Assembly: GCA_004431415.1 (NCBI GenBank) | Contig: QPMI01000484.1 | Span: forward strand, 124,001 to 188,000 | From: Cyanophora paradoxa CCMP329 | Taxonomy: Eukaryota; Plantae; Glaucophyta | DNA: 64,000 bases | Direction: 5' to 3' | In this document: positions 4,014 through 48,366 of the stretch, in pieces | How the letters are laid out: each line of letters begins with the position of its first letter | Numbering within the stretch: the stretch's first letter is position 1 | Program-made: the position numbers and the translations under genes | Notes under the pieces: model-generated | Seen by the model: the letters and a program-made list of their open reading frames with translations, nothing else | Databases searched by the model: none | What the model was told of the DNA's origin: nothing

Positions 4014-4051
<38 letters not shown>

Positions 4052-13203: not shown

Positions 13204-13210
13204 AAAAACG

Positions 13211-14941
13211 ATGTACCCAGGCCATCGCGAAGGCCTGCGCGTACGGGACACTGGCGATGCTAGCGCATCGTCCAGCAGCATAAACAGCCTTCCGGCACCA
13301 AACGGAGCTGGAGGACACCGCCCGAGCACACCGGAGCCGAAAACAAGGCTCGCGACGCAACGCCAACAACAAGATGCAATCCAAGCGGCGTCGCAGCTCA
13401 GCGGTGCAGAGGGAGTCGAACGATGTGGCGCCGCGCTCACTCTCGAGCCGAGCGACCACCAAGAAGTCAACGCCGCCCGCGACGGAATTCGAGCCGGGCG
13501 GCGACCGACCGAACTAGCTCCTTCTGCTTGCAGAAGCCCCCGTGCGATGCGCCCTTGCGAAGGGACATCACCCCGCCTCGCGCGTCGTTCGCGCCACCCG
13601 CCCGGGCCTCACGCCCGCCCCGCAGTTCTCAAATCACCCTTCTTTCACTGCGTGGCGGGCGCGGGCGGCCGACGCTCGAACGACGTGCCCCCCGCGTTCG
13701 CTGCCGACGCTAAAGGCATGCCTCGCTTTGGCCGATGTCATGGGGCCTTACACCGTCGTCGTGCGGTTTGGCTATCCATGAATAAGCCCCCCCTCAATCC
13801 ACACAGGAGCCGATGTAACGGGGCCTTACACCGTCGTCGTACGGTTTGGCTATCCGTCCGGTCTCCCCCGCTGCGCCGATGCCACGGGGCCACACGCCGT
13901 CGTCGAGCGGCCCGGCTCTCCGAGGATAGGCAACCCGCGCGTCGATCCCCCGGGGCCGCAAGGCTCACCGGGGTAAGATGCCCCCCCGCTGTTCGCTCTC
14001 CGCCGCGCGCGCCCTCCCGCCCGCCTGCACGCCGCCCGCCTCCCCACCTCGACCCTCTCATGCCACACCTTCCTCGCAGGAAACTGGGTCTCCGGCATGA
14101 TGTCTCCACCCTTGGTCTGTTCTCTTTTCTTTTCCTCGCCCTCCTCCCGCCGGCGGCCAGCCTCGCTCCGGTCCTCGGATCCCTAACTGCACCCACCACC
14201 TGGGCTCTCCCCTCCACCCCTATCCTCGAGACCCGCGAGTCTCCTCTCTCTAGCTTCACAGGGGCTCTTATAACCTCCCTCCTTCTCTCCATAGCCCTCC
14301 TCCTTTTCGATCTCCCCCACGTGCCCCCCAGCCCCGCATCATCTCGGGGCCCGCACCGTAACCCAGACTCCCGCCCATACCCCGCCCCATCCCCCTCCCC
14401 CCCCGCTCCACCCGGCCCTGGCTCAACCCGCCCCCGCCGACGTGTCTGGCGCCACCTCTCCAAGGCCGCTCGCCGCCGCCTGCGCCGTGCTCGTCCGCGC
14501 CGGCATCTCCAGACCACCCTCCCCCTCCCCCCTACCGCTACCTGGGTACCCAGATCCCCCTATTCCCCCTACACGTCCCGCCCTACACCTCGGTCCCCCC
14601 GCCGCCGTCACTCCCGTCGCTTTCGTCGCTTTCTGACTCCCTCCCTCCCACCTCCCCCGGCCCCCGCCTCATCCCCCGCCCCTCCGGATCCCACGACCTC
14701 TCTCTCTGCCCCTACAACCCAAACGCTTGCCCTACGCCCCTCCTCCTCCGCTCGCCAACGGACACGCACTGCCCGCCCGCCCCCCCCCCTCCCTATGCGC
14801 CCCTCTTTCTCCACGGCCCGCGCAAGCCGCAATTTCGCCGCCGCCGTTCTTCTTCGCTCTCACTGGTTGCCCGCCCTGCCACCTCCCCCACGCTTCCGAC
14901 CCGACCACCTCGCCCGCCCTTTCGGTCCGGCACTCGACTAA
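13211..14941 (+). CDS. LINE 5' ORF (576 aa), Pro/Arg-rich with two hydrophobic segments; function unknown
   Basis: ATG lies 7 nt inside the element end. Hydrophobic segments LGLFSFLFLALL and FTGALITSLLLSIALLLF. Low complexity, so it may be UTR. Confidence 0.3.
   Translation: MYPGHREGLRVRDTGDASASSSSINSLPAPNGAGGHRPSTPEPKTRLATQRQQQDAIQAASQLSGAEGVERCGAALTLEPSDHQEVNAARDGIRAGRRPTELAPSACRSPRAMRPCEGTSPRLARRSRHPPGPHARPAVLKSPFFHCVAGAGGRRSNDVPPAFAADAKGMPRFGRCHGALHRRRAVWLSMNKPPLNPHRSRCNGALHRRRTVWLSVRSPPLRRCHGATRRRRAARLSEDRQPARRSPGAARLTGVRCPPAVRSPPRAPSRPPARRPPPHLDPLMPHLPRRKLGLRHDVSTLGLFSFLFLALLPPAASLAPVLGSLTAPTTWALPSTPILETRESPLSSFTGALITSLLLSIALLLFDLPHVPPSPASSRGPHRNPDSRPYPAPSPSPPAPPGPGSTRPRRRVWRHLSKAARRRLRRARPRRHLQTTLPLPPTATWVPRSPYSPYTSRPTPRSPRRRHSRRFRRFLTPSLPPPPAPASSPAPPDPTTSLSAPTTQTLALRPSSSARQRTRTARPPPPLPMRPSFSTARASRNFAAAVLLRSHWLPALPPPPRFRPDHLARPFGPALD
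13735..13925 (+). repeat. Three diverged direct repeats near the LINE 5' end
   Basis: ggggccttacaccgtcgtcgt(g/a)cggtttggctatcc at ~13742 and ~13820; diverged ggggccacacgccgtcgtcgagcggcccggctctcc at ~13885. Confidence 0.75.
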
Positions 14942-14983
14942 CACGCACTATCCTCTTATCCCGCTGTCCCGAACCCAGCGGCC

Positions 14984-17900
14984 ATGGCCATGTACACTCC
15001 CCCGAACCCACCCCCACCCCTACTCCCCCCATGCCCCCAGCTCCTCGCACCCCCACCCTCCCCCGCCCTCTCTCCCGCCCTCCCCCCTCTCATCAGACGC
15101 CCCCTACAGCGCGGCCGCCCCATTATAACATCCCCAACAACCTCACCTACCCATGCCTTCTCCTCCTCTTTCTTCTCAACCAAATCTTCTTTCCCCTCCC
15201 GGTCTCCCCCTCAACCCCGCGCCCCCTACCCCACCTCTCCTTCCCCTGCCCCCACCCTCCCCCTCCCAGCCCCCCTCTCAGTCTGCCCCCAACACGCCCC
15301 CAGTCCACGGGCCCGCCCTATCCTGGATGTCCCGAGCTCTCACCCTGACATCAACCCAGCCCCCCCCCCCCCTAGCCGCATCCCGCCCTCCCTGGTCGCA
15401 CCTCCCGCCTCCCTTCTCCAACTTCCCTCCGCCTTTCTGCTCCCTCCCTGCCTTTTTCTCCTCCTCCTATTGCACCGCCTGACAACCCCCCTCTTCAACC
15501 CCACCCCTGCCCCACATGCTCTCCGGGATTTCCTTGCACAAGGACGCCACCGGTTCGGTTCGCCCCTCTCCCCAGCACGCACACCTCCCCCTCCATACCT
15601 CCCGTTAGCAGCCCTTCTTCTCCATCTTTACCTCGCGTCCCCGGCCCTCCCCACTATTCTTCAAATCGGCGCCTCCGCCCGCTTCCTGCTTGGCTCCCTC
15701 CCACTCCTCCCTCTCTCTCTCCTCGGGGACCCCCCGCCCTACTCCCCCCCCGCGCCTCCCCCCACTCCACCAGACTCCCCCCACCAAACCCCCCTTGCGG
15801 CGGGGTGCCTCCTCTGCACCCTCATTCTCGCACGCCGCCGCTTCCCCTCCTCGCCCTCTAACCACGCCTTACTTAGTCTTCTCACCCTCCCCCTCCACCC
15901 CCCGCCCCCACCGCTCCCCCGATACTCCCCCATCCTCCCTCCCTACGCTAGCCTCCTCGCCGCTCTCGCCTGGGCTCAGCTTACTGCAGCCATCCTCAAT
16001 TTCCCCCCTTTAGCATTCGAACTCCTCCTGACCACTCCGGCCTCCCTAGCGGCAGAATGGCACGTCCTTGTCTGCACAACCTTCCACTTCCTAGTAGACC
16101 TCCGGCGAGCCCTGTACGAGGCAGCAGACCCGGGCGGAACTCCCCTCTCTCTCTCCCTCATCGCCACCGCCCCACTCATCCTTCTCCACTTCTCCCGGCC
16201 CGAGCCCATTGAATTTGTCAGTCTTATCACTGCGGCATCCCTCGCGGGTTTTGCGCTCCAATCTCTCCTCGATAGTATCTCTCCCCGCGGCCCCCTCCTC
16301 CAAGCTCCGTACCCGAACGCCGTCCCCGTACCAGTGATTCGCTCCCTCCTCCTCCTTTCCCTATTTACACACACGGAGACGCGCACGGCCACACCAAGCC
16401 CTCCTCCCGCCCGGCCCAGCGCCTCCGCCCTGGCTGTACTCGCGTTCACGCTCGTGCTCGCCGGCTTGTTGTGGACCGTCTTAACAAAAATTTCCAGTCA
16501 CTGTACCTCCCCCCTACCCTGGGGGGTACGCACACGCGGCAATCCCCGATTCTCACCTGCACAACTCACAACCCGGCCCCTGCATCTCGCCGCCATGGGC
16601 CGGAAAAGTGGCAAATCCCCAGCTGACCCCAATATTCCCGAGTCTGATCTGGGAACAGCCCCACCCGACCCAACGGACTCCCTAGCGACCTCGCTCTCGA
16701 CGGCCGCGACCCTCCCTTCCGGATCCCAAGGGCAGTCCGAGCCACCCCTTCCGTCAGCAACTCCCCTCCCAGCCGCCGAGGGCATCCCGGAGGAAACCAC
16801 CCACCCTGCGATCTCGGCGGCCCGAACGCAATCAGAACAGCGTTTCGGTCCGGGCCCCACCTCTCTCATCCTCCCCATTATCGCTTTCATCACTCACTGG
16901 ACCACAGCGGCCGTCCAGCAGACAAAGAACAGTTTGTACGGAGCAGTGGCGATCCGGCGCCAGATCTTTTCCTCCCCCTCTGCTCTGCTAAAAGCCTCCC
17001 CGGAGAACACAGCCTCCGGCTGCCGACGCCCCCTCCCAGACCAAGCCCGTAACACCCTCGTCATCGTGGCTCCCTACACCTCATTCATGCCGGCCATGCC
17101 GCCCGGCTTCCTGGCCCTCGCAGAAGGCAAACTGACAGCCGCAAACCAAGACTACGTCAAAGCAAACCGTGGCTACGGCAACAATTTCCTTCGCGACCAC
17201 CCGACTCACCCAGCACACGGCAAGCTCAACCTGAACGGCGCAATCCCCACTGTCTTCAGCGGCACTGAGCGGGATAGCCGCCGTACCTACGCGACTCAGG
17301 CAGTGGGATTCCTGGTCAGCAACAGCCCCGCCCTGACTCTTTTCCACCAGCTCCCAACCCCACTCCCCAGGTTGATCCCATCGGCCACTGGACTCCTGAA
17401 TTCCAGAACAAAGTACTCGACTGGGCGGCCCAAGACCTCGCCCTCCCGGACCGCAAAGGTGCTCGCGGCGCACTCCTCGACGACTACCGCGCCCTCCTGG
17501 AACCCCAAGCTGACCGCGAACTCTACGAATACGTCGTACGCACTTCTCCTAGCTGCACACCGCACTTGCGCTCACTCCCAGCCTATGCAGATCCGCCACG
17601 CGGCCCCCGGCGGGCCCCTACGCGCAGAAGACGGATCCGCGGTCACTACCACGCTCGCCGAAGTTCTGACGGACTTCCAACGGTACCTTTTCAACGTTCT
17701 CCAGGCAGGCGGCACAGCACCGGACGTCGCCGGCCGCGCCGCAATCAACGCCATGCAAGCCCTCACGTACAACAGCAAACTCGACGGTCATGAGGCCTTC
17801 GTCCTCGTGGATAGCAGCACGCACCGCATCCTGTGCGCGGCAGACCCCGCCAACCAGCTCCCTCCGGCCGAGGCGGTCATGGCCAGCGCCTTCTTCCCCT

Positions 17901-18621
17901 CCCTCCTCGGATGCGCTCTCTGCCTCCCGCGCGGCCTCCACTCCGACGATCACCTCCGCAGCGCCTCCTTCTCCCTGTTTATCCCGGGCTCCACCGCTCC
18001 CTCGTTTCAAGCGGTATCTTACATCACGCGCGCCCTCTATCTCCAGGGGATCACGGTCCTGGGCACGATCCACTCCTCGCTCTCCGCCGGTAACCCAACC
18101 CTCGTGGTCGTATGCGCGCTTGACTCCTACGCTTCGCTCCCCCTCCCGTCGCGCCGCCTCTCCTTCTCCGATGACGGCCTCGCACTCCAAGCTTTCTTCC
18201 GCACTTTCAACATCGTCCGCCTCTTTCCTTTTTCTCACCCCATTCCTCGACGTAACGCTACCCTCAGGGAACTGAAGCTGCCCCGGTGCTGGTGGAAACC
18301 TATGAAATACTACTCACGCCTCCGGCCTCTGATCTCTCACTTGACCTCACCTACGGCGATTTCAACCTCGACCTCACGGTCGCGCTCTCCAAGTGCTGCA
18401 CTAAGTGCCGCACCGGGCCACACCCTACCGACTGGTTCCACGGGCCCATCACATGCCGGGTGCTCCCACTCCTGCTGCCCCCCACCCCACCCGCGGCCCC
18501 TCACCTCCTCGTAGGCCAAACGCCAGCGCACTTCCGATGTAATCATGCTGGCGGCTCCCCGACCCTTGCCTCCCCGCCTGTATCGTCGCCTTTGATCTCG
18601 CGCCGCAAGGCCCGCTTCTAG
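14984..18621 (+). CDS. LINE ORF1-like region: long hydrophobic N-terminal part, globular part from MGRKSGKS (~16594), C-terminal CCHC-like Zn knuckle (in a shifted frame)
   Basis: 1176-aa ORF 14984-18514 plus overlapping frame 18286-18621 with LTYGDFNLDLTVALSKCCTKCRTGPHPTDWFHGPITC (Cx2Cx4H...C). It lies upstream of the pol ORF. Confidence 0.5.
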
Positions 18622-21600
18622 CACTCATGTACTGGCCGCTGCACGTCCGTAAAAGGTTACAGTCTCACTTTACACCTCAGCCTGCCCGGCCCCCGCACCT
18701 GGCACATCCACTCCCACCCCTCACCCTCACTCCATTTGCACTTTCTGCACATGGCTCTGGGCGGAATAGCACACCCATGCCCCAATTTCAAATTCATAAT
18801 CGACAGACCCCACAGGCCCCGCGGCCCCCCCAGACAGCACTCGCCGCCTCCGTACCGAGCACATACTCTCACTCCAACAGCCCTTGCCAGCCGCCGTCCA
18901 GACCCCACTCACCGCCTACCTCCCCCCCCCCGCACACATCGGCCCAGTGTGATCTGCAGGACACCGTCAGCCCCCCCAACGCCCGCCGCCGCGCTAGGGT
19001 CGGCGGACCTGAGCCCGGGGCGGGATCGCCGACGCACCCCTACGCGCCGCCCGCCCTGCCCCCGCCTACGCCGGCTCTGCACGCCTACAAGACAGCCTCA
19101 GCCCCCCGACGCCCGCCGCCGCACTACGACCGATGCCCGACGCTATGCTCAGGCCAACGACCTGATCCTGAAGCGCGAACGCCGCCGAGCCCCCACGCGC
19201 CGCCCGCCTCGCCCTCGCCCGCGACAGCTCCGCGCGACCTGCAAGAACCTATCAGCCCCCCCGCTGCCCGACGAAATACTCAGGCTGCCGAACCTGGGCC
19301 TACAACGACGCCACCACCCGACCCTCGCGCGCCGCCCGGTCGCCCCGCCGCCCGACACCATGCTAGGCCTGACGGACCAGAGACTGAGACGCCGTCTCCG
19401 ATAGCCTCTCCCACGCTGTCCGCCTCGCCTCCGCGGGCGACGGCTGCGCACGGCCGGCAGGAAATGCCGGGGCCCCGCGCGCCGCCCGTCTTCCTCCCGC
19501 CTGCACCGACGATCCCGCGGGACCCTACTACACCGGCTCTCTTGCCCGCACTCGCGCTGGAGCTCCGCGGCCTGCCGGCGGCTGCCCTACAAGATTCGAT
19601 CCAATGCCCGAGGCTTAGCGCTTGGGCCGAGGAGCCCGCGCCAACTCCACAGGACTCATCCCAGGTACATCCCGCCGAATCCGGGCGCGATATGCAGCTG
19701 CTGCTGGACCCCAGTGTGCCGTCCGCCTCTCTCCTGCCCGCAACGCTATGCGACTCGCGCGCTGGCCCGGAACGGCCGACTGCGCCGGACACCAGAATGA
19801 CTACCATCGCATCCTGCACAGCGCTCATCCTACGACACCCGGCTTCCCCCCCCCCATAGGGGTACATACCACCTCAGCTCCGCCCAGCCCAACCATGAAT
19901 CCGCTTGCCGCGGTTCACAACCTGATGGACCTCTCTCGGCAAACACTACGTAAGTGGCTCGACAGCACCCCCACTCACCGATCCCACTCGCCTGAAGCAC
20001 CCGCAGAAGATATCCACCGAGAGCTCACACACGTCAACATCCCCGACGACCAGGCGGATGAAGACGAGCGGGACGAGAACGCTCAAGCCCTTTCCGCCCG
20101 TCTTCGCCAGCTGCTCACCGGACTAGGCGGCTCTCCGACAGTAGAAACTTACTCTGATACTCTCCCAGCATCATCGGGTGCAATCCTTGCTACAGCGTCG
20201 CTGGTGAAACAGTAGCGGAAGCCTCAGCCACCACCCAGCTCGCCAACCCGGTAGTAGTCGTTCTCAACTGTGAGCCAGCCGGCGATTACTCCAGCTCAGC
20301 TAGCACCCTCAGCTACGCATCGGCATCCCCGCACTCGCCATCCCCGGACCACATCCAGCGTACCACCCTCGAAGCGGCGGAAGACTGGCGAGCTCACGTA
20401 GGATCTGAGCTAGCACGACGCGGCATCTTCCTGGTGCCAGCCACACCCACTTTCTTCACCTAGCGTGTACTGGCCCTCTCGAATGCGGCCTGCAGTCCGA
20501 ACGCTCCCTCCCCGCTTTCAGGGTCCGTCCCACTGCCAACCTCTTCACCCCCCTATACTCATACTCGCCAGCTCGATCCTCTCCTTCCTCCCGGCCCCGT
20601 AGCGCACGGGCGCCGGACCGCAACCGCCCAAATCCTGGCGGGACAACTGCGCAACCTCCTCCACGGCTACTGCGACCCGGACCGCACTTACGGCGTCCTC
20701 GCGGCCCACACGTCCGCACTCCTTCGGGGAGGCGACCCCGTTCTCATCCGCCTCGCTGCCTTAGGCCAAGTCCCTCTCACGGACCTTCTCTTGGGCGCCC
20801 TTATCCTTCTCATAGAAACCAATTCCCCCGATGCCTTCGAGACCTCCTCCCTCGACGCCTTTATCGAGGCCATCCTCTCCATCCGCCAATTTGGTATAAC
20901 CTTCGACCCCGACCTCAACATCTCCGAACTCACCCTTTTCCTCCCCCCGAAAACCGCTACCTCCCTTCTTCTCTGCCTCCCTGACTTCCCCTTCATCCCC
21001 TCCACCCTCTGGGCAGCCATCACCCACTCCCGGACACCCTCCCGCCGCTCCTTACTGCTCCTCCATCACCCGTTCCGCACTCACCACGACCGGGGCGACT
21101 TTGTTCTTCTTCTGGCCCGCTCTCCCGATCTCTTCCCCGACCCCCACCCACTCTAAACGAGAGCCCTTTCACGATAGGAAATTCCGCACCGAGAATTTTT
21201 CCGCCAAACTGGACGCTCTCACAACGCCTCTCCCCCTGCCCCTCTTTGGACTTCTCGCCGACCCCGAGTCCCTACCATACATTCTCCTTCTTTTCCCAAG
21301 GCCGCGTACTCCATGCTCCACCTCAAACTTCCCTCCCACTCACCACCTTCCCCACCCCTTCCACTCCTGCGAATCCACCTCCCCTCTCCGCACCCGTCCC
21401 ATATCACGGCCCGCCCCCGCCTTCTGTCCAACCCTAAAGCAAAGGACGACTACGATGACTTTCGGGCACCCGCTCTGGGACTCTTCGGTAGCGAAGGCGA
21501 CCAATACCTCCCGCTATCCCCCGGCTCCTCGCCGCCATCATCTGCCCCACTGCCTCGCCTCCGACTTCTTCTATCGGGATACCTCCTGGATCCACCCCGC

Positions 21601-21949
21601 TCACCGGTGCCCGGTACGCCGACATCACTCTCCCACTCGGTGCCGCCCCACGCTTACCCCCCCCGCAGGCGGCGTGACCCTCCTCCCCCCTCCTCCCTCC
21701 TCCCCCCCTCCCCCCCCTACCATCCCCTTCGACACCCCCGCCTGCTCCCCTCCCCGCGCCGACGTTTGCGCCGCGTTTATGAATACGACAAGTGGCCTCC
21801 CCTGCCTCACATACACACCCGGGCTACCCCCTCGAGCTCGAAGCCGCGATAGGGCTATCGCACCTGGGCCCGTACCGCGAACGTCATCGGGCCCCCGCAC
21901 GGCGCCCGATTTACCCTTGCCCGCGTCAGCTCCGCTTGTACCGGCAGAC

Positions 21950-24540
21950 CCCCGCGCGCCGCCCGCCCTGCCCCCGCCCGCGCCGGCCCCTCGCGACCTG
22001 CCGACAGACCTTAGCCTCCCCGACGCCCGCCGCCGCGCTCGGTCCAACGGACCTGAACCTGAAACGAGACCGCAGCCGAACCCCCGCGCGCCGCCCGCCT
22101 CTCCCCCGCCTCAGCCGTACCAGCGCGACGGACCAACGCCTGCAACGTTCCCACCGTCGTGCGCGTCGCCCGCCTCATCCTCGCCCAAGCCGACCCCGCG
22201 CGACCGGCCGGAGGCCCTTAGCCTCCCCGACGCCCACCGCCGCGCTCGGGCTGCCAGACCTGAGCCTGCAGCAAGGTTGCCGCCGACCTATCACGCGCTG
22301 CCCGCCTCGCTCCCACCCACGCCGACTTTGCGGGACCTGCCGGCAGACCTCAGCCCCCCCGGCGCCCGCCGCCGCGCTAGGGCTGACGGACCTGAGCCTA
22401 AGGCGAGACCCCTGCCGGCCTCCCACGCGTCGCCCGCCTCGCCCCCGCCCCAGCCGGACCCGCGCGACCTGCAGGGAGCTCTCAGCCTCCACGACGCCCG
22501 ACGTCGGGCCGACGGACCAGCGCCCGAGGCGATACCACCTTTGAGCCTCCGAACGCCGCCCACCTCACCCTCGCCCAAGCCGACCCCGCGCGACCGGCCG
22601 GCAGACCCTAACCCCCCCAACACCCGCCGCCACGCTCGGGCCGACGGACCTGAACCTGAAGCGAGACCGCCGCCGACCCCCCACGCTCCGCCCGCCTCGC
22701 TCCCGCCCCAGCCGGCCCAGCGCGACCGGCAGGAAGACCTCAGCCTCCCCGACGCCCGAAGCTGCGCCTGGGCCGACAGCTCCGAGCCTGCAACGAGACC
22801 ACCGCCGAGCTCCCACGCTCAGCCTGCCTCGCCCCCGCCCACGCCGGCCCCGTGCGCCCTGCCGGACGCCCTCAGCCTCCCCGCGGCCCAACGCCGCGCT
22901 CGGGCTGACAGACCTGAGCCTGCAGCCAGCTCGCCTCCGAGCTCTCACGCACAGTCCGCCTCGCCCCCGTCCACTCTGACTTCGCGGCCCCCCCGCGACC
23001 TGCACTACACTGTCCGCCCCTCCGATGCCCGGCTCTGCGCCCAGGCTGACGGACCTGGATTAGCCGCGAAACCGCCGACGGGCCCCAGCACGCCGCCCGT
23101 CCCGCCTCCGCTCCGGGCGCAGCACGATCTACAAGACGCTGTCAGCCTCTCCGCTGCCCGACTCCGCGCTCGCGCTGACGGACCTGGATCTGCAGTGCAG
23201 CCGCCGCCGGGCCCCGGCGCGCCGCCCGCCCTGCCTCCGCTCGAGCCGGCGCCACCGGGCCCCTGCGCGCCTCCGGTTCCGCCCCCGCCCTCGCCGGCGC
23301 GGTGCGCCCTGCAGGACGCTGTCGGTTTCCCCGCTGCCCGGCGCCGCGCCCGCGCTGACGGACCTGGACCCGACGTGCAGCCACCGCCGAGCCCCAGCGC
23401 GCCTCGCGCCTCGCCTCCGCCCGCGCCGCGCGACCTGCAGAACACTGTCGGCCGCCCCGCTGCCCGGCGCCGCGTCCGCACTGACGGACCTGGACCTGAA
23501 GAGAAGCCGCCACCGAACCCCAGCGCGAGCCGCGCCTCGCCTCCGCCCGCGCCGTGTGACCTGCAGGATGCTGTCGGCCGCCCCGCTGCCCGGCGCCGCG
23601 CCCACACTGACGGACCTGGACCTGAAGAGAAGCCGGCGACGGGCTCCAGCGCGAGCCAAGCCTCGCCCCCGCCCGCGCCGCGCGACCTGCAGGATGCTGT
23701 CGGCCGCCCTGCTCCCCGGCGCCGCGCCCGGACTGACGGACCTGGACCTGAAGAGAACCCGCTGACGGGCCCCAGCGCGCCACCTGTCTCGTCTCCGCCC
23801 ACCCCGCGCGACCTGCAGGGCGCTGTCGGCCGCCCCGCTGCCCGACGCCGCGCCCGGGCCAAAGGACCTGAACCTGAAGAGAATCCGCCGACGGACCCCA
23901 GCGCGCCGCCTGTCTCGCCCCCGCCCGTCCCGTGCGACCTGCAGGACGCTGTCGGCCGCCCCACTGCCCGGCGCCGCGCCCGCGCTGATGGACCTGGACC
24001 CGACGAGAAACCGCCGCCGAGCCCCAACGCACCGCCTGGGTCGCCCCCGCCCGCGCCGCGCGACCTTCAGGACGCTGCCGGCCGCCCCGCTGCCCCGCGC
24101 CGCGCCCGCGCTGACGGACCTGGATTTGAAGAGAAGCCGCCGCAGAGCCCCAGCGCGCCTCGCCCCTCGCCTCCGCCCGCGCCGCGCGACCTGCAGGACG
24201 CTGCCGGCCGCCCAGCTGCCCGGCACAGCGCCCGCGCTGACGGACCTGGACCTAATGTGAAGCCGCCGCCGGCCCCAGCACGCCGCCCGTCTCGCCTCCG
24301 CCCGCGCCGGCGCCGCGCGACCTGCAGGACGCTGTCGGCTTCCCTGCTGCCGGCGCCGCGCCCGCGCTGACGGACCTGGACCTAAAGTGAAGCCGCCGCC
24401 GGGCCCCAGCGAGCCGCCCGTCTCGCCTCCGCCCGCGCCGGCGCTGCGCGACCTGCGGGATGCCGTCGGCCTCCCTGCTGCCCGGCGCCATGCCCGTGCT
24501 GACGGACCTGCGGCGCCGAGCGCCCTGCAGGACGCGGTCG
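21950..24540 (+). repeat. Array of ~20 units of a ~126-132-bp GC-rich repeat (42-44 aa, RDLQDAVGRPAARRRARADGPGPEEKPPP...)
   Basis: gacctgcag(g/a)a core recurs with a 126-bp period (~23431, 23557, 23683, 23810, 23936, 24061, 24187). Mostly in frame within ORF 21101-24370. Confidence 0.9.
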
Positions 24541-32520: not shown

Positions 32521-33010
32521 ACTTGCGACCTTCAAAACCGAAGGCGTGCTCTCTGCCCCCCTACGGAGCCCGCCAGCCCCGACCCCAACCTCTCCCTCCT
32601 CTCTTCAACTATGCCGCCAACCTGCACCCATCCGGCTTGCTTTCAAGCTCGCTGTCGAAACCTTTCTCAATAAACACGGCCAGCGGTATATCCAGCTCCT
32701 TCTCACTCCCGAGAGCAGCCCGACTACGCCCAACGCGCCACGAAATCCACCGCTCCCTCCTCTGTGCTATCGCCCAAAGTATCAAGTCCGTCGCCCACTC
32801 TCAAGAATTCTCTACTGCTAAAGTCCTCCAACACCGCGTCGCTGCCCAGGGAGATATGGCTAAGTTCAACCATCTATCTGCACTGGACGCTGACGACGAA
32901 CAACTCGTTGGCCGCGTTGGACAGGCCTTACACGACTGGGCGCACCAAGGCTCCACAGACCACCCGCCTGACGAAACTATCCGGGCTGTCCTCCGGGACC
33001 TTCCCAAGAC

Positions 33011-35050
33011 GTGACGGACATCCGAAAAGCTGCGGGCTCGGACACCACACTGGCTTTCTGCCCCTCCCTCCTCGCTTTCCCCGACCCTCCTAATTACCCT
33101 GAATTCGAGAATGGTACCATTACAGGCTCTGAAATCGCCGAGTACCATACTCAACTAAGTACATGGCACTTACAGGCGCGGGCCGCCCTGGACAATCATC
33201 GCCGTGCATATACCGAAGCCGACATTGCTCGCAATATTGACACCCGCCGCCACCTCCTGTCCCACTGTCGAAGTATGGGCCGGGCTATTCAACTCCTCCT
33301 CTCCCGTTTCCGATCCGCCCCCCGCCTATACCTCACCCGCACGGCAGCGGGACTACCCGAAGTGCTCACCGATCCCAATGAAATTAAACGCGCACATCTG
33401 GATCACTTCAAAAATTTCTGGCGACTCCGCAAGGCTGCTCCAAACCTGGATGCCATAGCTACGAAATTCGCGGACATAGAAAACGGCGCCTGGTTGGGCA
33501 GATTTTGGAAACGCCAGTACCGACCCCTTTCCCACTTCACCCCCGCCGTCTGGGACGGACTAATGGCCATGCCAGAGGACCCCGAACTCGATCGCCTCAT
33601 CTCGTCCCTGTCCAATGGCGCAGGCGGTCCTCCGGCCTCACGAACGGAATGATTAAAATGCTCTGGTCCCCCTCCGCCTCTCCAAGACGGAACGCCAGGC
33701 CTTAGCCGCCTCACACTCTACAGACGAGATCAACAGCTTCGAGTCCGCGGCTCACTGGACCACCTCGCGCGACGCCATCCGAGCTCTAGTTCAATCCACT
33801 CTTCTCGGCCACGTGCCCGACCACGCACTTCGCGGTCAAGTCTACGCTATCCCGAAACGTGATAATTCAGCAGATCTTGCCGATCTCCGCCCATCACCTT
33901 CAAGAAGTCACCTGGAAGCTGGTCACGGGCCTCCTGACCCACCGCATGGAAGACCGTATTGATACACATAACATTCTACGCGGCCGCAACTATGGCTTTT
34001 GTCGCGCGAATCTACCGACCCTGTTCTCTACGCCCTCCGATCCTCCCTCGAGGACGCGCACCAGTTCAAAAAGCCAATCTTCGGCGGCCTGGGGATATTG
34101 CCAGCGCCTACGACAGTGTCTCCTGGCATAGCCAAGAGCTCAGCCTTAATCGTATCCAACTCCACCTCCATCCTGAAGGGAACGATACATAGCCTCCACA
34201 AAAAAGCAGCTCAGCACCGCACGGCGTGCATCCTTACCCCCACGGCCGCACGGAATATTTTCAAGTCCCCTGCGGCCTCCCCAAGGAGGCATCGAAGCCC
34301 CTCTCACTGGCGCATTTTCTTCGACGCCGCTCTCACCGCCATCGAAGAACGAGCGACTCAGTCCAATTTCGGATACCAACTCGGGCCGCACCGATCTGAC
34401 CCTACCCGCCCCCGTTCCCCCGCCCACCATGCCCTGGCGAACCCCTCTACTTCCCCTCCGGTCCTGCCCACAGTCTCTGTGCTCGCATACGCCGATGACA
34501 CCACCATGCTTGCCAGCTCGGCTCAGGGTCTCCAACATATGCTTGACTGGCTGTCCGAATTTCTCCATATCCATGGCATGAACTTGAACGCCAAAAGACG
34601 GAAATTTTCCACTGGAAACCCCCCCGATCCGAAGCGCCAGTCAAGAGCAAATACTATGTCGGCGTCGGCGATTCCAGAGCTGAGGTTGGCCACATCCTCT
34701 CCCCCACAACACCATTCCGCGTCCTCGGCGTCCAGTTTACTGCGAACCTGTCTTGGACCCACCAAGTCCGTCTACTCAAGTCCCAGCTCCAGTCCGCAAT
34801 CTCCGTTCTAGCCACAAAGAAGATTACCGTTCACGAATTCCAAGTGATACTACACCGGGTTCTCTTCCCTAAACTGGCATACCCTCTCCGCATCATGACC
34901 TTAACGTCATCCCAATGCCAATCCCTCGACGCTGTCTGGCTCACCGCGGCCAAACACACGGCCAACCTGGCCCAGTCCGTATCCACGGCTGCCTTCTCTT
35001 CCATCTATCGCCTTCCCTCACTAGCCGTCATCCAACGTCAACAGCAGTGC
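33011..35050 (+). CDS. Non-LTR reverse transcriptase domain (frameshifted as assembled)
   Basis: GAGGPSGLTNGMIK, VYAIPK, QEVTWKL..RNYGF, DIASAYDSV, GLPQGG..PLHWRIFFD (after restoring single C), LAYADDTTML, GMNLNAK, FRVLGV, LFPKLAYPL. Confidence 0.92.
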
Positions 35051-36504
35051 GTCGACGAGCGCCTCCGCCAGGAACTAGCCTCTCACACATCATCACTCTA
35101 CGGCCAAATATACCGACAACGTGTCCTCGACACCCAGGCCCGATACGGGCTTCCCCTTCTCCCACACGAATATCCGAACCTCCCCTCGGGCCCTCACACT
35201 ACAGAAAAATATTACGCTTGCCATCACGGCAGACCTGACCTCCACTCCATCACATCCTCACAACGTGCGACTCCTGGACACATGGCCTCCCCTCCCGCCG
35301 ATCCCATCTTCGACGAGAATATATTATATCAACGCAATTGTCGCCCCTCACCCTCCAACAAGCCGGTCAGCGACTCTATCGCTGCGGCCTCCTCACAATC
35401 CGCGACATCACGGCCCTGACGGCTCCCTTGCCGAATGGTCCCTCCTCTGAGTCACGGCCGTGTCCCGGCATACTACAAACGTGCCCCCTCCTGGTGGACG
35501 CTGTCCGCGAAGAACTCTCTCTTCCCGCCCCTCCACCCGGTCCCCTTTCCTCCCCGCCACCCTATGCCTCCACCGCCCTCTATCCAGACATTCGTCGCTC
35601 TCTCCAAGCTAACGCCGTCCTTGCGGGACTAAACCTTGGCGATTTTGTATGGACATCCCAAGGCCTAGTTGGCCGCGTCGTTGGGAAACCCCGATCCGGA
35701 CGAACACCTGGACGAACCGGCCTCCGAGGACCCTGACGCGGACCCCAACTGCCCCGGGATTCAGAGTATAACTATGGGTGGAACTTGTCCATTACTGCCT
35801 CACCCCATATGATGGCCTCTCCACGCGCGACCCCGGTCTTTCGGCGCTTGAGCTCGACCCCGCTGGCGTGAACGCAGACTGGAATTCCAATTTGCCCTCA
35901 CCCAAAATACTGCGGCTCTGAACAGCTTCATCGCGAGCTGGGCCTTTCTACGACTGCTTGCCGATGGTCGAGTACGCATCCCACGTCCGCCGAATCCCGG
36001 CAGGCTCGTCGTGCGAATCGAAGGGCTGGTCTCCGAGCCTCTCCAATCTCAATAGGCCGGTGCCCACCCGCTCCCGGCAGCTGCCCGATTCCACCTCCGC
36101 CTTCACATGCTCCCACTCTAGAGGGCAGCATCCCCCCCGTGCTCAACCCACACGCGCAGCTAAAAAAGCCCGCCTTGACCCCTCCTCAGCTCCCCTCCTG
36201 CTCAATATGACCCGAACTCCCCCTTCCAACCTCCCCCGCGAAATCACACACATTGGCTTCATCGATCTCTGGCTCCGGGAAACTGACTGGTGGGACTCTT
36301 TCCGAGCGGAGGCCCAAGCTACCAATGTTGCCCTCGAGAGACGCCCACGCCTTACGACCCCCACATCACAAGCCGACCGCGCCTTCTATGAATCCACGGC
36401 CGGGCTCGACTTCCTTTTCATTACCTCCCGAGCCCTTTTCGCAGAGCTCTGCCCTACACTCCGCGCACTAAACTCCCCGCCCCTTCCCTCCGGAACTACT
36501 CCCC

Positions 36505-39500
36505 GGGTAATATACACGGACGCCAGCACACAAAAACAGGGCTCCGCCTCTGTCCGAACCACTTACGCCGGCCTGCACCCCTCGAAAATAATCCCGACCT
36601 GCCTGACAAAATCGAGTTCGCCCACCGCCTCCCGGCGTCCACATAACGTGAACCTGGAGAGCTAGCAGGCACAATCTCCGCAGCATTCACGTATTTCGGG
36701 CCCACGGGCGGGAAAATTATCACGGACAGTCAGAACACTATCCGAGCCCTGACAGCCTTCGCCTTTCAAGACCCTTCATCTTTCTCCCATCCCATCAACT
36801 TCCGCACCCTGCTCCGCCGAGAAGACGGGCCCTTCTCCTCAACGCTCGAACGCAATACGCCATTCGTATCGCCCAAGACCCGAACTTCCAAGTCACGCTT
36901 CAGTGGGTCCCCTCTCACCAACCAAAGACCATCCCGCGGCCACCTGCAACGGCTCCGACACCAACGACGACCCGCCGCCCGGCCCCTCTTCCCCCGCCGA
37001 CCCCGTGTCCCCGCAGCGGACCAGCTGCCCCCTTCCTACCGCCCCGCAGACATTCCCTGCCTCGGCTCCTTACCACTATATTGGTGGAATGGACATCCCC
37101 GACGCCCGACTCCTCTTTTCGGACGACTCCTCCCCGCCCTCCCTCCGTCACTATTCTCGTCCTCCTCCCGCCTCGCCGGCACATTCGCACATATATCCTA
37201 GCTGACAGCCCCGCCGACTACCATTTCCTCCGCTGCCAAGCGGACCTTGTTGACTATGTAGATGCCTCCGAGACTACCAACACCCATCTGGTCCTTGACC
37301 TTGTCCCCCTCGCGTCCGCCAGACTTGAACGCGCCTTCATGGCGGAGGACACCGTCATCTGGAACCGCTGCATCCGACTTCCCAAAGCTCATACTCTCTT
37401 TCTTTCCGACGAACACCTGACTATCGTCTCGGACTGTGACATCCTCCGCGCCTACTCCGCTTTCCTTGCAGCCTTAGGACGCAGAGACATCACTCACAAC
37501 ATCTCCTTCCAGTGCTGCTCCCTCCCAACCCAATCTTCCTTCAACCACTCCCGAGGACGCCCCTGATGTTGACCACCCTGATCCTGGGCCTACAAGGAAA
37601 CTCGCCCTCGACTATTACTTAGCCCACCCTAGGGGCTCCGGCCCCACCTGGCACTTCTACCCACTTCCCTCTGCAAACCCGCTGTCCCCGCCGACCGTGA
37701 CACGCCTCTCCCGCCTGGTACTGGGACGAGGACCTTACACTCGCCCCCACCTCCCAGACCGAGGCTGGCACCCCTCTGGTCGCGTACCACCGTTGCGACC
37801 CTGGCATGTGGGGCACCCCTATTTCCTCCCTGATCGCAGAACAATGGGCACGGGGACCCGCCCTCTCCTGCCCGCACTGCCACCCACCCCGCCCCGCCTG
37901 GCCCCCACCCACGTTCCCTCTCCGCGACCAAACCGGCGCCCTTCCTGTTTTATTCGAACGCTATGGACGCCGAGCCATCCCTACTCAGCTGCCATCGACC
38001 CCGACGGCCCCAGGTATGATCGCCGAGTACTTCCCCTCCTCGACGCATAAAATCTCGCCTGGCTGCCCTTAAAGCGGCCCCCTCTCCCTCATCGACCCCA
38101 ACCCTCGGTCTGGGGCCCACCTGGCCACACCGTTCTCCTCGCACAACCCATACCTGCAGAACCCGTCGACGCTTTCTTCAGACTTCTCCAAAACCGCCAA
38201 GTCTCCTTCCGCCTGCATGCCCCGACCACCCCAAGTGCCTCTTCCTCTCGTCCTCCCACGCAACCTCGATCCTCATGGGCACAGCCCCCACTGCCCTTCT
38301 ATCAAAGCCCGCGCAGGCCAGCCACAACTGGACCGACCCTACGTCCCGCACCCTTTCTCCCCAACGGAATACGATTATATTCTCCTCCCCCTGCCCCCTC
38401 TGGTCCCGACCCTGGCGACTAGCAATCATCTCGGCCCGCCTCCGCGAAATCCGCATCCTGGACGTCACCCGCAAACCCGCCTCCGACGTCACGGCCCCTC
38501 TTAAAGACTGGGTCATCAACTGGTGGACGGCGACTCTCCGCCCCGGCGACTCCTCCCCACGCTCGGCCTGGAAGTACGACACCAGCACCTTCCCCACACA
38601 AGCCTGGAAAAACGCTCACACGGGTGAAGACGCTCTCTTCGTCATGACCGCTGCTGAGTTCATTGGCCGCGGTGAGGAAGTCCACCTGTACGGCAAAGGA
38701 CGGGGCCGCCCCATCCCCTTCCACGCCCCCATCTACCGGGAGCGTTGGGCGGCCGCTCTCCTTCTCCGGGACCCTGAGATTCTCCTGGGGACAGTCCAGG
38801 CCAACGACCCGGCATTCACAACAAAACGACAGCGCATGACCCCGCGCACCAGCTCCCGCCTTTCCCAGCACACGGCAGCCAAAGCCCGCCGTCCGGTTAG
38901 ACGCAAGCGAGACCCCACCCCTCCTCCCTTCCGTCCTCCCCTCCCCCCCCCGTCCCTTACACCGGTAACCGCCCGGTCCCCCAATTCCCCTCCCTCCTCC
39001 CCGCAGCTCCCCACCCCCCCCCCACCCTGCCCTTCCCACCCCCACGCCCCCGGCGCCCGAGGCCCGACCAACTGCTTCCCAGGCCGAACCCCCGCTCACT
39101 CGACTGAATTTCCCCTCCCTCGCCCCCTGACGCTGGCGGAGAAAAGTTGGCTGGGGAATGCCTTCCGGTTTGCAGACAATGATTACTGCGCGGAGCAAAC
39201 TCTCATGTCGAAACCCCCCTCCCACCCGCCCCCCGACCTGATCCTCACCGCCACTCCCTCATTCGACGAGGCGACCTTATCCACCTCCGGCCGAATGCAG
39301 CCTCAGCCTCCCCTCGTGGAAGCCTTCCTTGACATGCTCTCCTCCCGCGAAGCCGCCCTGGCCTCGCCTCACCCTACCTACTTCCTGTCGTCCAGCTCTT
39401 ACCCCGCTAGTGCAGCCTCCCAATTTGACTCTCGGGCTCTGCCCCCTCCCCTGCACCACTACCTTCCCCCGGACGCCTTCTCGATGCCCGCCTTGTCCTC

Positions 39501-40505
39501 GTCCCCATCCTTACCTATCGCCCCACTCATCATGCCCCACCAGCCCCCTCGCCGACCCCTCCCTCAGGCAGATCCCGGCACCCTCAGGGCCCCCCGGGAC
39601 ACTGGCACCTACTTGCTTTATTTCCTCAGACGCGCTCGTTCTACATTCACAACGGCTCCCTCGACGTCCCTGATCACCTTGTCTCCTTTGCACAAGACTT
39701 GGCGGCCACTTGGAGTCAACGCGACTCTGGCTCTCCCCTCCCCCTCACTCCATTCTGCAGATGGACCTACCTACGCCCGGAGACATCCCTCTCCGTTCTC
39801 CAGCCTCCCAACAGCACGGCCTGCGGCCCTCTCCTCCTCCTCACAGCTGACCTACTCAGTCGCTCCTCAGCACTTGCCCCGTCGGACCTGCCCCGCCCCC
39901 CAGCCTACATTCAGGTCGACAATGCTGCGCTCCGCAGATACCGTGAATATATTGCCCTCAGCCTCTGCTACGGGTCCGTCACCCTCGACCCTATATGCTG
40001 TGGCCCTGCCCTCCCGGCCCTCAGGCCCCCCCCGACCTTCCCGGGGCGCCCCCGACCGCCACGCCGCCCCCCAGTCTCCACCGGCGGCACCCTCCCTACC
40101 CTCGACTCCCCACCACCCTCCCCCGACCGCCCAGCCCTCCCGCGCTCCCAACTGTGCTTGAGTCTACCCCGCCTCGCCCTGCAGGGCCCGCACCCCCTCC
40201 CTCCCGGTGCTCGCTACGCCCAAGAACTCGCCTCTCAGCTCGCCGACCTGGCCCGCAACGAAGCCTCCGCAACAGCACGCCGTCTCTTCCGGCCGTCCCA
40301 CGTGACCCCGCTCGAGGCGGCGACCATCCTAGCTGAAGCCGCTCACCGCGACGCCGCCCAGCCGCCACCACGGTCCGCCAAAGCATCTAAAACGGCCGCA
40401 AAGAAAGAGGCGGCCAGGACCCCGGCCAAGAGCCGTATCCCGAACCCAGCCTATACTCCTGACAACTGCCACAATGACGCCGTTGACAAGCTCGCCAAAA
40501 CGGCC
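36505..40505 (+). CDS. RNase H domain split by a large insertion
   Basis: VIYTDAS (D 36519), GELAG (~36656), IITDSQNTIRAL (~36722), LQWVPSH (36898-36918). The terminal helix motif HNDAVDKLAK appears only at ~40470-40500. Confidence 0.75.
38330..38790 (+). CDS. Degenerate Ulp1/SENP-like (peptidase C48) domain, copy 1
   Basis: EYDYILLP..PWRLAIISARLREIRILD..WKYDTSTFPTQ..GEDALFVMTAAEFI..PIYRERWAAALL parallels SENP ILLVPI..HWCLAVV..YYDS..PQQ.NGSDCGMF..YFRKRMVWEIL. The His and Cys positions are not conserved. Confidence 0.55.
39120..39975 (+). CDS. Ulp1/SENP-like (peptidase C48) cysteine protease domain, copy 2, catalytic His and Cys retained
   Basis: PLTLAEKSWLGNAF..LVEAFLDMLSSRE..TYFLSSSSY, then (one frameshift) LLDARLVLVPI..GHWHLLALFPQTRSFYIHNGS (His 39600-39602)..LQPPNSTACGPLLL (Cys 39822-39824)..RRYREYIALSL. 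Confidence 0.75.
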
Positions 40506-40929
40506 CCAGACGCCCCCCTCTCAGCCCTTCTCTTCATTCCTCACAGTTTCAAATGCTTCCTCATCCGCGTCGGCCTCCCGCCCCCGTCATCCCAAGGCCC
40601 AGTTCCAGGAGCCGAGCCTTACAGAGGCAGACTCCATGCATACCGCGTTGAGGGGGACCCCCGCTCTCACTTCCTAGCCGAAGCCTCCCTCTCCCAATAC
40701 CTCGACTGGCGCCAGCTTCGCAACGCGGGGGCCGTCCTCAGCAATCCTCACGTTACCCTCGCCCCAGCCCTCTCCCTCGTGTCCGACAAGCCACCGGACC
40801 GCCGTACCCCCACAGGCGATCACCTCCGCAAAGTCAGATTCCAGTGCATTCTGGGAGGCCTCCCCTCCCTCACCGTCCGCCTCCTCCACGACCCCGACCT
40901 ATACGGCCCCCTCTTTCCTGACGGTATCG

Positions 40930-41630
40930 CCCACTGCCCCTTCTGCCACCTCCCCCCCACCCCTGCCCCAGTCCCCGAGGACCCTACTTCCCCACCCCCA
41001 CCCTCCCCGCCCCCTGCCACGTGCACCCCCCCGGGCTCCCCCCCGCCCTCTTCCCCACCGAGGGCCGCAGACCCCAGACAGCCCGACCCTACAACCCACC
41101 CCCCCGAAGACTTCATTCACATATTTACTTGCCCCGCCGCTCGCCTCCTCCTCCAAGCTTTCCAGGATGCACTCGTGACCTTCCTCCGCACCCGGGTTCT
41201 CCGCCACTCGCCCAAACCCTTAGGACACGACGACACTATTTTTCAACTCTTTCCCTTCCTCCGCCTCGTCTCCCCTGACCCCGCCTCTCCCCTCCATTCC
41301 GCCCTCCTCTCCCCCACCGAAAACCCGGCCCTTTTCCGCCCCCCAGGTCTTACCGATACCCTATGGACAAAGCTTAGCCCGGCCTTGGCTGACATACTCC
41401 CCTTCCCCGCCCCTGCCCTCCTGCGCCTCGGTACCCCGGCAGGATTGCCCGCCCTCTGCGCAGCCCTGGGCATCAACAAGACCATCACAATGTCAATCCA
41501 AAAAGATTTAGCGCTACTCCTCGACCAACACCTCCGTGCGATCTGGAGGGACCGCTGCGCCCGCAACCACGCCTGGGAGCTCCGACAAGGCATCACTGAC
41601 AGAACCAAACGTCGATACCGCAAACATGCC
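40930..41630 (+). CDS. LINE ORF2 C-terminal Zn knuckle and IWxxR(C) region
   Basis: HCPFCH...(Pro-rich insert)...EDFIHIFTCP; AIWRDRCARNHAWELRQGITDRTKR. Confidence 0.75.
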
Positions 41631-42551
41631 GACACCAAACCCTCCCGCTCGCCGCCAGTACAGCCGCCTAGTCCCCCCCTCCCCCCCCCCCCCCCGCCCC
41701 CTCCCTCCATGATACCATCTCCATCACTGACTTCTGCTGCGGATTGGACTCGGAAGGCCAACCCTGGGTTCTCCTGGAAAATATCCGCCAAGCAATAGCA
41801 CGACTCCCTGCCGCCCCCTCACCCCAGGCCGCCCCTCCCTCAGGCCCTCCCTCCCCCAACCGCCCGATGCAGGACCCACCGCCGGGACATCTGACTTCTC
41901 TTGCACCTGTGGCACCCAATTTTCCTCCGCAGCTGCCCTCCAGGCCCACTCCGACGCCAGACGGGGAAAGTGCCCCGCTCGCCCAGAGACCACCTCATAC
42001 TCTCGACCTGCCTCCCAACCTGCTGCACCCCCAACGCAGCCTTCCCACAAGAACCCCGACAATAGCACCCTGCCCGCTCGGCCCGCGGGCCCTACGTCCG
42101 CTACTCAACCTTCCAAGCGCCCCGCCCCAACGCCCCCCTGGCCCTCCCTCGAAACGAACTCGCCCGTCGCCTGCCTCACGCAAACGGACAACCGCTACTC
42201 CCCCCGCCCCGGCACCCAAACGCCCGCGCCCCATGACCCCTCCCCTTCCCGCCTCTGCACCCGCCCCACCCGTACCTACGGCAAAAAGAAAGGCAACCGG
42301 TCGCAAGACCCCCAAGCGCGGGACCAAAAAAGCGCGAACGGTGTCGATACCTGCTGGACAACCCACAATCACGTCCCTCTTCGCACCTGGAGTGTACAAA
42401 CCACTAACGACGCTTCAAGTAGCCGACCCTCCCCCCCCCTCCTCGCTTCAGCCGGCCCCCCCGACCGGGACCCCGCACGGTGCCGCCCCGCGGCCCCCTA
42501 CGGTTCCTCCCCAGCCCCAACCGACTCACAAGTGCCGAACCCCTCGTTGAC

Positions 42552-42692
42552 TCCGGCCACCCCTATGGCTTCGGCCCTCCCCTCGGCTTCGGCCCCCCCC
42601 TCGGCTTCGGCCACCCCATCGGCTTCGGCCCCCCCCCCGGCTTCGGCCACCCCATCGGCCTCGGCCACCCCTCTGGCTTCGGCCACCCCCCC
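42552..42692 (+). repeat. 18-bp minisatellite (~7.5 copies) near the LINE 3' end
   Basis: cggccaccccatcggctt-like unit repeated, translating as GHPIGF/GPPLGF. Confidence 0.85.
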
Positions 42693-43276
42693 TACTCAGA
42701 CCGACCCCTCCCGACCCCTCGCGACCCGCCTCGCCTCCGCACTCCCCGCTCTCTGCGCCGCCTGTCAGTGCCCACGCTTACTCCACTCTGCCGTCCCGGC
42801 ACCGCTCCCTGCCCTGCCCCGCATCCGCTGCCCACCCCCTACCGCTGCCTCCGCCCACTCCCTCTCCTTCCTCATATCCTCCTCCTACCACCTTCTTCAC
42901 CTTGACAGAACGGGACACCGATTAATCGGGGTCCTGGGGCGCAGGTGAGGAGGAGGGAGGAGGCAGAGTGAGGAGGAGGAGGGGTGGCGGAGCGGCGACA
43001 AGGGAGGGCGGCGGACTGCGAGACATTTCACTTCCAGGGCTCATGAGGGATGGAGGAGTTGATCAAGGGGTGGGCGCGCGGGTCTGGTTACGGCTATCAC
43101 CGAAAACCATGGCTCCCCCACTCAGGCGAACCTCCCATATTGAGCGACCCATGGCCGGCACCTCGCTAGCATCTTCGACTAGATAGATGACCGGTCGGAA
43201 GGGCGCGTCACGTAGAACATTGATACATGTGCCGTGGTGTATCAATGCGACGTCCACTTTTGCAAAAAAAAAAAAA

Positions 43277-48360: not shown

Positions 48361-48366
48361 CGTGCG

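Follow-up and report, generated by a model that had tools for sequence, protein, structure and literature searches.

Introduction

Long interspersed elements (LINEs) are usually 4-8 kb long, and most of their new copies are 5'-truncated, with reverse transcription seldom reaching the end. Longer ones are on record from algae and other protists. The cryptophyte element Dualen-1_GCr has an open reading frame (ORF) of 5,287 aa, which carries SET, C48, APE, reverse transcriptase (RT), RNase H, CCHC and RLE domains (Lescot et al. 2016, PMC5029228), while in the active Chlamydomonas family Dualen-4b, more than half of the insertions have flanking duplications of >50 bp, with a median of about 900 bp (PMC9977147). 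Here we describe an element of 30,073 bp at positions 13204-43276 of a 64,000-nucleotide stretch of Cyanophora paradoxa CCMP329 DNA (contig QPMI01000484.1, positions 124,001 to 188,000; "the window" is this whole stretch). We consider it likely, from its sequence, to be one insertion of a giant APE-type LINE, made in one piece by target-primed reverse transcription (TPRT).

The element resembles the Dualen/RandI families in that APE lies upstream of the RT, RNase H-like and CCHC motifs follow the RT, a C48-type protease appears to be present, the ORF is very long with extra domains, and the hosts are protists or algae. However, the defining second endonuclease of these families, RLE, was not detected in the window element by Pfam, and we therefore do not file the element as Dualen in spite of this apparent resemblance in extra domains. 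Its C48-like domain comes after the RT, inside the RNase H-like region, whereas Dualen-1_GCr lists C48 before APE (PMC5029228). The SET domain of Dualen-1_GCr was not found in the window element, and the 5,287 aa of that family imply at least 16 kb, as against 30 kb here. Unlike the long duplications of Dualen-4b, the target-site duplication (TSD) is 18 bp and stands beside a pure A tail. With L1/Tx1, the element has in common the poly(A) tail, a short TSD (about 7-20 bp in L1/Tx1), an APE-RT core and a C-terminal Cys/His knuckle, but L1/Tx1 elements are 4-8 kb long and have a recognisable ORF1, whereas Pfam found no ORF1 domains in the 5' ORFs of the window. The Terminons are reportedly giant Penelope-like (Athena) retroelements of bdelloid rotifers, which likewise encode an RT, reach tens of kb and carry many additional ORFs; however, they are said to have a Penelope-type RT and a telomeric location, and to be without APE, a poly(A) tail or such a TSD. 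The integration signature, together with the APE-RT core, identifies our element as an APE-type LINE. An undescribed giant lineage had been proposed in a preliminary description of this DNA. This holds insofar as 30 kb exceeds the described LINEs that we found, but very long multi-domain LINE ORFs are already on record (Dualen-1_GCr, PMC5029228), and the lineage is therefore the extreme of a known trend, not wholly unprecedented. The 30-kb length and the additional coding sequence of about 18 kb exceed any LINE description that we found.

Results

Boundaries and insertion signature

We observed that the 18-mer TGTCACGTTCTTTTCGTG occurred exactly twice in the window, immediately to the left and to the right of the element, even when up to 3 mismatches were allowed (the chance expectation with 3 mismatches was 0.02 matches). 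The similarity of the two flanks ended at 18 bp with no match further out, indicating a TSD rather than a piece of a larger duplication. The interval between the two copies measured 30,073 bp as assembled, and its last letters, A13, adjoined the right TSD copy; this was the sole A/T run of ≥7 within the element. The GC skew in 1-kb windows was -0.335 ± 0.10 inside the element (n=30) and +0.011 ± 0.084 outside (n=33), and the shift occurred within a few hundred bases of both element edges.

As in APE-type LINEs, APE and RT shared a strand, with APE on the N-terminal side; the palm motif (Y/F)ADD took the form AYADD; and an A tail and a flanking TSD were seen without a long terminal repeat (LTR) or terminal inverted repeat (TIR). 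Inside the element, we found no TIR, LTR or internal TSD-like pair, no second APE or RT (either by self-tblastx or by tblastn with the relatives described below), and no integrase or transposase. The perfect 18-bp TSD, the length, the A13 end, the C-rich strand bias and the lack of nested-element marks, all noted in the preliminary description, were borne out by these results.

It had also been suggested that the TSD lies within a host exon, the frame of which is restored on excision. On the minus strand, the host halves did form one 58-codon open frame across a single TSD copy, possibly a host exon, but Pfam searches of the two halves (each separately, at relaxed thresholds) gave no match. 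An Rfam scan of the whole window gave no match.

The ORF2-equivalent and its relatives

We searched 1.84 billion representative proteins exhaustively with the APE piece using phmmer, and obtained five matches: the window's own 218-aa gene model in EukProt, a 3,720-aa protein (P0002, 43% identity) and three distant ones. P0002 is an unannotated, intact single ORF on an 11.9-kb metagenome contig from ENA (ERZ27275054 k141_121716; locus L001). It was colinear over its whole length with 31637-42948 of the window, by tblastn as well as by frameshift-aware alignment, the identity being 41% for the APE, 54% for the thumb of the RT and 45-49% for the C-terminal domain. Locus L001 also resembled the window in its negative GC skew and in a purine-rich tract in the 3' untranslated region (UTR).

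The APE region of the window matched the Pfam family Exo_endo_phos (E 1.6e-5, about 31.6-32.4 kb, i.e. aa 480-734 of the 784-codon frame 30104-32455), and a linker of about 440 aa separated it from the RT. The RVT_1 match around AYADD was weak and below the cut-off, because of the frame breaks described below, and became clear once the region was aligned to the relatives. P0002 itself matched RVT_1 (E 6e-18) and Exo_endo_phos (E 8e-8). The APE and RT that had been placed in the 3' 11 kb were thus confirmed. The RNase H and zinc knuckle that had been placed there with them were seen as motifs conserved with P0002, but without a Pfam match, and a Pfam search of P0002:1200-1800 also gave none.

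The RNase H-like motifs appeared to be split, both in the window and in P0002 (about 1630-1762 and about 2920 in the latter), with ND.VDKLAK lying about 1,150-1,200 aa past the SHQ motif. The NDAVDKLAK motif of the window may correspond to the last RNase H helix, which it resembles. The insert of about 3.5 kb between the two motif groups contained several conserved blocks as well as the C48-like protease motifs; in the P0002 counterpart, Peptidase_C48 was matched at E 0.0064, under the family cut-off. The knuckle region and the C-terminal domain were the best conserved stretch of the ORF2-equivalent. In the domain after the knuckle, Pfam gave no match and inspection by eye showed no clear PD-(D/E)xK motif, and an AlphaFold2 model of 41136-41650 from a two-sequence alignment was unusable (predicted local distance difference test score, pLDDT, 35). 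A low-complexity tail preceded the ORF2 stop codon at 42946.

When we searched the PDB with phmmer, the window pieces gave no match, and neither did the C-terminal 2,271 aa of P0002. The RT of P0002 matched R2 proteins (E 8e-10) and not L1, which fits a non-L1 placement, as for Dualen/RandI, at the level of a similarity match and not of a phylogeny. Human L1 ORF2p structures are contained in the PDB, and no L1 match was obtained with either the window pieces or P0002.

LINE models of Cyanophora paradoxa in EukProt (EP00741; e.g. P0009, 1,408 aa) had the same build, in which about 440 aa of linker lie between the APE and the RT with its thumb. They mapped colinearly on the APE, linker and RT of the window, with 26-33% identity over the longer aligned stretches, but were much shorter; one of them was 30% identical to P0002 over 872 aa (E 8e-111). 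From the colinearity of P0002 and the colinear mapping of these models, an ORF2 of about 3,700 aa is a conserved feature of this lineage of LINEs, of which little is known.

Further searches added no relatives. A word-index search with the APE-containing ORF found no homologue, and one with the P0002 RT region found P0002 alone. Exact-protein look-ups of the window ORFs and of Cyanophora P0009 found no record, and two JGI metagenome scans (with APE and RT-thumb alignments) found no relatives. In L001, an upstream ORF ended 176 nt before the start of P0002, and the contig stopped 296 nt upstream of P0002; tblastx and blastn of the 5' 330 nt and the 3' end of L001 against the window gave no significant 5' match.

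Ties between the 5' 18.4 kb and ORF2

We compared strand-specific 4-mer profiles and observed that the non-repeat 5' part correlated with ORF2 (r = 0.89) and with the L001 ORF (r = 0.88), as against 0.34-0.37 with the flanks. Taken block by block, the three large non-repeat 5' blocks gave 0.83-0.86, and the short block at 30.5-31.6 kb gave 0.60. The excess of C over G on the sense strand was also seen in the metagenomic relative L001, and it can therefore be regarded as a trait of the lineage.

A codon model derived from conserved parts of ORF2 (52% C and 17% G at third positions) gave clear phases at 15.6-18.0, 20.1-21.0, 24.6-25.8, 27.6-28.2 and 30.6-32.4 kb, and its phases in the 5' part matched the open frames. 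We further estimated how many frame changes or stops are met in traversing each region, in comparison with locally composition-matched shuffles. The plus strand of the 5' 18.4 kb required 15, whereas the shuffles required 48.8 ± 3.6 and the minus strand 71; for ORF2, the count was 16, as against 39.7 ± 3.5 in the shuffles. Composition, codon usage, strand, stop depletion and the repeat family described below together support the view that the 5' 18.4 kb would belong to the same retroelement lineage as ORF2.

Frame breaks in ORF2

Unlike P0002, the reading frame of which is intact, ORF2 of the window showed about 49 frame changes when it was aligned to P0002 with our own frameshift-aware protein-to-DNA alignment. 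Good alignment flanked 38 of these, and frame changes were also seen independently against the Cyanophora proteins. About three quarters acted as single-base deletions, and no in-frame stop was present in the well-aligned parts. Of the 38 breaks, 27 lay near homopolymers, with 21 expected, which is a mild enrichment (P ~0.04). No frame break was found in 31637-32443 or in 40206-41774.

The 218-aa EukProt model was identical to 31802-32455 of the window. It ended at the stop that results from the first break (32444), and this break must therefore be present in the source used by EukProt too.

As assembled, this copy is predicted to be unable to make its own RT, and with some 40-50 frame breaks in the APE-RT gene, it offers no direct evidence on that enzyme. 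Ordinary neutral decay was rejected as the cause of the breaks, since it fits poorly with the scarcity of stops (38 well-flanked indels, but no in-frame stop in the well-aligned parts) and with the perfect TSDs and tail. A uniform assembly or consensus error was also rejected, as the breaks were confined to 32.4-40.2 kb. The closest relatives with annotation belong to a genome of 67.6% GC that was assembled from PacBio RSII data (PMC6704402). If the assembly of the window is that one or a similar one, it is plausible that some indel errors persist in a repeat; if not, this may be a defective copy that was mobilised in trans.

Layout of the 5' 18.4 kb

The coordinates of all features are collected in the table. 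The first 0.5 kb (13204-13710) may serve as a 5' UTR or promoter. Three repeats of about 78 bp lay 0.5 kb from the 5' end, inside the first open frame, at a position recalling that of the tandem promoter monomers of some L1 families.

The region at 15-18.6 kb had earlier been called ORF1-like. It did contain an ORF of 1,176 aa (14984-18514), in the phase that was strongly preferred by the ORF2-trained codon model at 15.6-18.0 kb. However, this ORF had no Pfam match and no homologue in the word-index search, so that the label is a positional one. AlphaFold2 on its 3' half gave an unusable model (pLDDT 34).

A single repeat family running through the interior had been reported as well, and we recovered it as a tandem family with a unit of about 126-132 bp, in three arrays on the same strand (18.9-19.35, 21.9-24.5 and 29.1-30.5 kb). 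These arrays total about 4.4 kb, and their units are 60-86% alike. The second array sits in an open frame of 1,156 codons (20900-24367), where 17 successive anchors kept one phase, and the spacings (207, 132, 126, 141, 129 and 180) were multiples of 3.

In an all-against-all blastp of the 5' segments, we found one pair only, the two copies of a protein domain of about 140 aa ('X'), which have diverged at the protein level. A short DNA match (21585-21620 and 26436-26471) was present downstream of the two copies, and the pair is an old internal duplication. Along with the 4-mer profile, the codon phases and the stop depletion, the constant phase of the array 2 units, the open frame common to array 3 and APE, and this duplication make up six independent ties of the 5' part to the element. 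A Pfam search of 27727-28512 gave no match. The "extensive cargo" of the preliminary description was not sustained, the 5' part being without recognisable function.

Table. Positions of the element, its target site and its internal features in the window
Feature	Position	Strand	Remarks
Left TSD copy, 18 bp	13186-13203	.	Exact match to 43277-43294
Whole element, 30,073 bp	13204-43276	+ (sense)	TSD-bracketed, A13 end; GC skew about -0.34 inside, about 0 outside
5' terminal region, near-zero skew	13204-13710	+	First ATG at 13211, 7 nt from the 5' end
Three direct repeats of ~78 bp (78/66 bp)	13721-13956	+	94% and 79% identity to the reference copy
One reading phase with a single in-frame stop (14939-14941)	13205-18511	+	ORFs 13211-14941 and 14984-18514
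Tandem array 1, diverged units of the ~130-bp family	18889-19354	+	
Protein domain 'X', copy 1	20740-21153	+	33% identity over 147 aa to 25659-26087, E 2e-13
Tandem array 2, ~20 units	21941-24546	+	42-44-aa Pro/Arg-rich repeats, motif PRDLQDAVG...ARRRARADGPGPE
791-codon open frame	24261-26633	+	Coding signal strong at 24.6-25.8 kb; second copy of domain 'X' at 25659-26087
Three overlapping open frames (26054-27883, 27727-28512, 28365-28937)	26054-28937	+	ORF2-like codon signal, peak at 27.6-28.2 kb
Tandem array 3, ~130-bp family	29144-30468	+	Last units share an open frame with APE
784-codon open frame	30104-32455	+	End of array 3, coding-like N-terminal extension (30.6-31.6 kb), APE
ORF2-equivalent	31637-42948	+	Colinear with the 3,720-aa P0002; stop codon 42946-42948
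APE endonuclease domain	31637-32520	+	41% identity to P0002; motifs LTWNIRRL, LVLGDMNS
RT fingers, palm and thumb	33630-35190	+	AYADD at 34485-34499; ~10 frameshifts
RNase H-like motifs YTDAST, ITDSQ, QWVPSHQ	36513-36921	+	Motif level; conserved with P0002
C48/Ulp1-like cysteine protease motifs GHWHLLALFP ... STACGP	39597-39830	+	Weak
NDAVDKLAK motif	40473-40499	+	~3.5 kb past the other RNase H-like motifs; same arrangement in P0002
CX2C...HX3C zinc knuckle with Pro-rich insert	40932-41135	+	Conserved in P0002
Conserved C-terminal domain	41136-41650	+	45% identity to P0002, no frame break
18-bp (6-aa) tandem repeats, C-terminal tail	42554-42692	+	
3' UTR, 315 nt, purine-rich GGAGG tract	42949-43263	+	Relative L001 has a similar tract
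A13 tail	43264-43276	+	
Right TSD copy, 18 bp	43277-43294	.	Exact match to the left copy

Neighbourhood of the element

A unit of about 3.36 kb was tandemly duplicated at the left end of the window (1-3280 and 3357-6636, 99.8% identity). A third copy, about 90% identical, was found at 43998-48364, i.e. to the right of the LINE and up to the insertion point of a Polinton/Maverick-like element. The LINE and the Polinton-like element thus lie within a region of segmental duplication. A tract at about 8000-10250, which separates the duplicated unit from the left flank of the LINE, had about 80% GC and long open frames on both strands, rich in Gly/Ala/Arg/Pro. The left flank itself (12036-13062, minus strand) contained a (SP)n-rich ORF and a '...SLTLVNNMDLTVVVRP' segment, which by eye resembled C-terminal parts of subtilisin-like proteases, with no Pfam support.

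The Polinton-like element (48367-59529, about 11.2 kb, about 48% GC) had 433-bp TIRs that were 99.8% identical and a 6-bp TSD, CGTGCG; a paralogous empty site, 90% identical, was seen near 7403-7412 (CGTGTG). It carried intact ORFs, among them an A32-like packaging ATPase that was supported by Pfam (Pox_A32). A 1,352-aa ORF looked by eye like a protein-primed family-B polymerase; Pfam found in it an Endonuclease VII segment and a C2H2 zinc finger and no polymerase domain. The capsid-like and integrase-like ORFs were labelled by eye or position and had no Pfam match. A 176-aa ORF within this element (53012-53542, minus strand; HNH_3 E 1.3e-11, weak AP2) looks like a homing-endonuclease-type passenger.

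Discussion

Several observations weigh against a one-piece insertion of a giant LINE. All 38 well-flanked frame breaks lie between 32445 and 40135, clustered unevenly in the middle 7.7 kb of ORF2. ORF2 of L001 begins with an ATG at the APE, whereas the window has no ATG there and has other upstream sequence. No other copy of the element was found in the window or in the metagenome scans, the database searches found no relative covering the 5' 18 kb, and Pfam at relaxed thresholds gave nothing useful for the 5' coding-like segments, leaving the 5' ORFs with no function or fold.

The lack of any relative of the 5' part in our searches, the start of the L001 ORF2 at the APE after a separate upstream ORF, and the modular build of the 5' part (three blocks, each closed by a repeat array) would also suit a chimeric cDNA. 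Here, a LINE of about 12-13 kb (about 30.5-43.3 kb) would have been joined to 17-18 kb of foreign 5' sequence, either by 5' transduction (i.e. read-through from a far upstream promoter at the source locus) or by template switching to other RNAs during reverse transcription. We consider this improbable, since in its strand-specific composition and its codon bias the 5' part is like the element and unlike the host, its same-strand stop depletion equals that of ORF2, and the repeat family extends into the APE open frame. Nor is there an internal A-run where the 3' end of an mRNA would join, and whatever was transduced would need to be, in turn, an old part of this lineage that lies in the same orientation.

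That the element was shorter at insertion, and later grew in place by nested insertions or array expansion, seems very unlikely to us. Although the 4.4 kb of arrays could change in length by unequal exchange, the array units are only 60-86% alike while the TSDs and A13 are perfect, so that the arrays are older than what must be a young insertion; no nested TSD, TIR, LTR, tail or transposase was found inside the element, and its composition is uniform. It is also hard to credit an assembly artefact, in which long-read misjoins or collapsed repeats would have produced a false 30-kb interior between true LINE ends. The dense, deletion-biased single-base breaks at 32.4-40.2 kb do partly resemble consensus errors (with mild homopolymer enrichment only), and PacBio RSII data underlie the assembly of the nearest annotated relatives. 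However, a misjoin would not give matching TSDs, one orientation, one composition and frame continuity over 30 kb, and the long ORFs of the neighbouring Polinton-like element, including that of 1,352 aa, are intact, indicating that the assembly is accurate nearby.

If the one-piece insertion of a giant LINE is correct, an RNA of about 30 kb would have been copied by TPRT from a nick at the target, leaving the A13 tail and the 18-bp TSD, and the element would lie antisense to what may be a gene of the host. Its 3' 11.3 kb would encode an ORF2-type polyprotein, with APE, linker, RT, RNase H-like region, a C48-like insert of about 3.5 kb, CCHC and the C-terminal domain. The 5' 18.4 kb would be upstream coding sequence of the same element, so that sense-strand coding would extend from near the ATG at 13211 to 42948. 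This part may consist of three modules, each closed by an array of 42-44-aa Pro/Arg-rich repeats, with the last array in frame into the APE. As for the source of the RT, either indel errors in the assembly mask an intact copy, or a functional relative may have mobilised a defective one. Of the TPRT of a single 30-kb RNA that had been proposed, one insertion with a LINE signature stands, and so does a 5' part of the same lineage, while the single 30-kb RNA itself is something we infer, as we do any role of the 5' part and the origin of the RT activity. What the sequence does show are the boundaries, the order of the domains, the colinearity with P0002, and the composition, codon bias and stop depletion that both parts have in common.

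More doubtful is a fuller version, in which this would be a full-length copy from an autonomous LINE lineage of glaucophytes or related protists, with an RNA of about 30 kb that is in essence a single coding sequence of some 9,900 codons, begins 7 nt from the 5' end and is copied in one pass by TPRT, a C48 insert (about 1,150 aa) that splits the RNase H, and frame breaks that are assembly errors. If it were true, we would know of no longer non-LTR retrotransposon and of no longer product of TPRT, and the element would represent a previously uncharacterised clade.

A TSD-bracketed copy of 30 kb would about double the longest LINE coding length that we found on record (at least 16 kb, in Dualen-1_GCr). 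It would also set a new mark for the reach of an RT in vivo, a matter of relevance to RT enzymology and to tools for long cDNA. Further, it would show that LINEs can gain about 18 kb of extra coding sequence, as some LTR and Penelope-like elements do. Together, these findings expose what would be a LINE clade with an 11-kb ORF2, of which no more than unannotated gene models and a single metagenome contig had been known.

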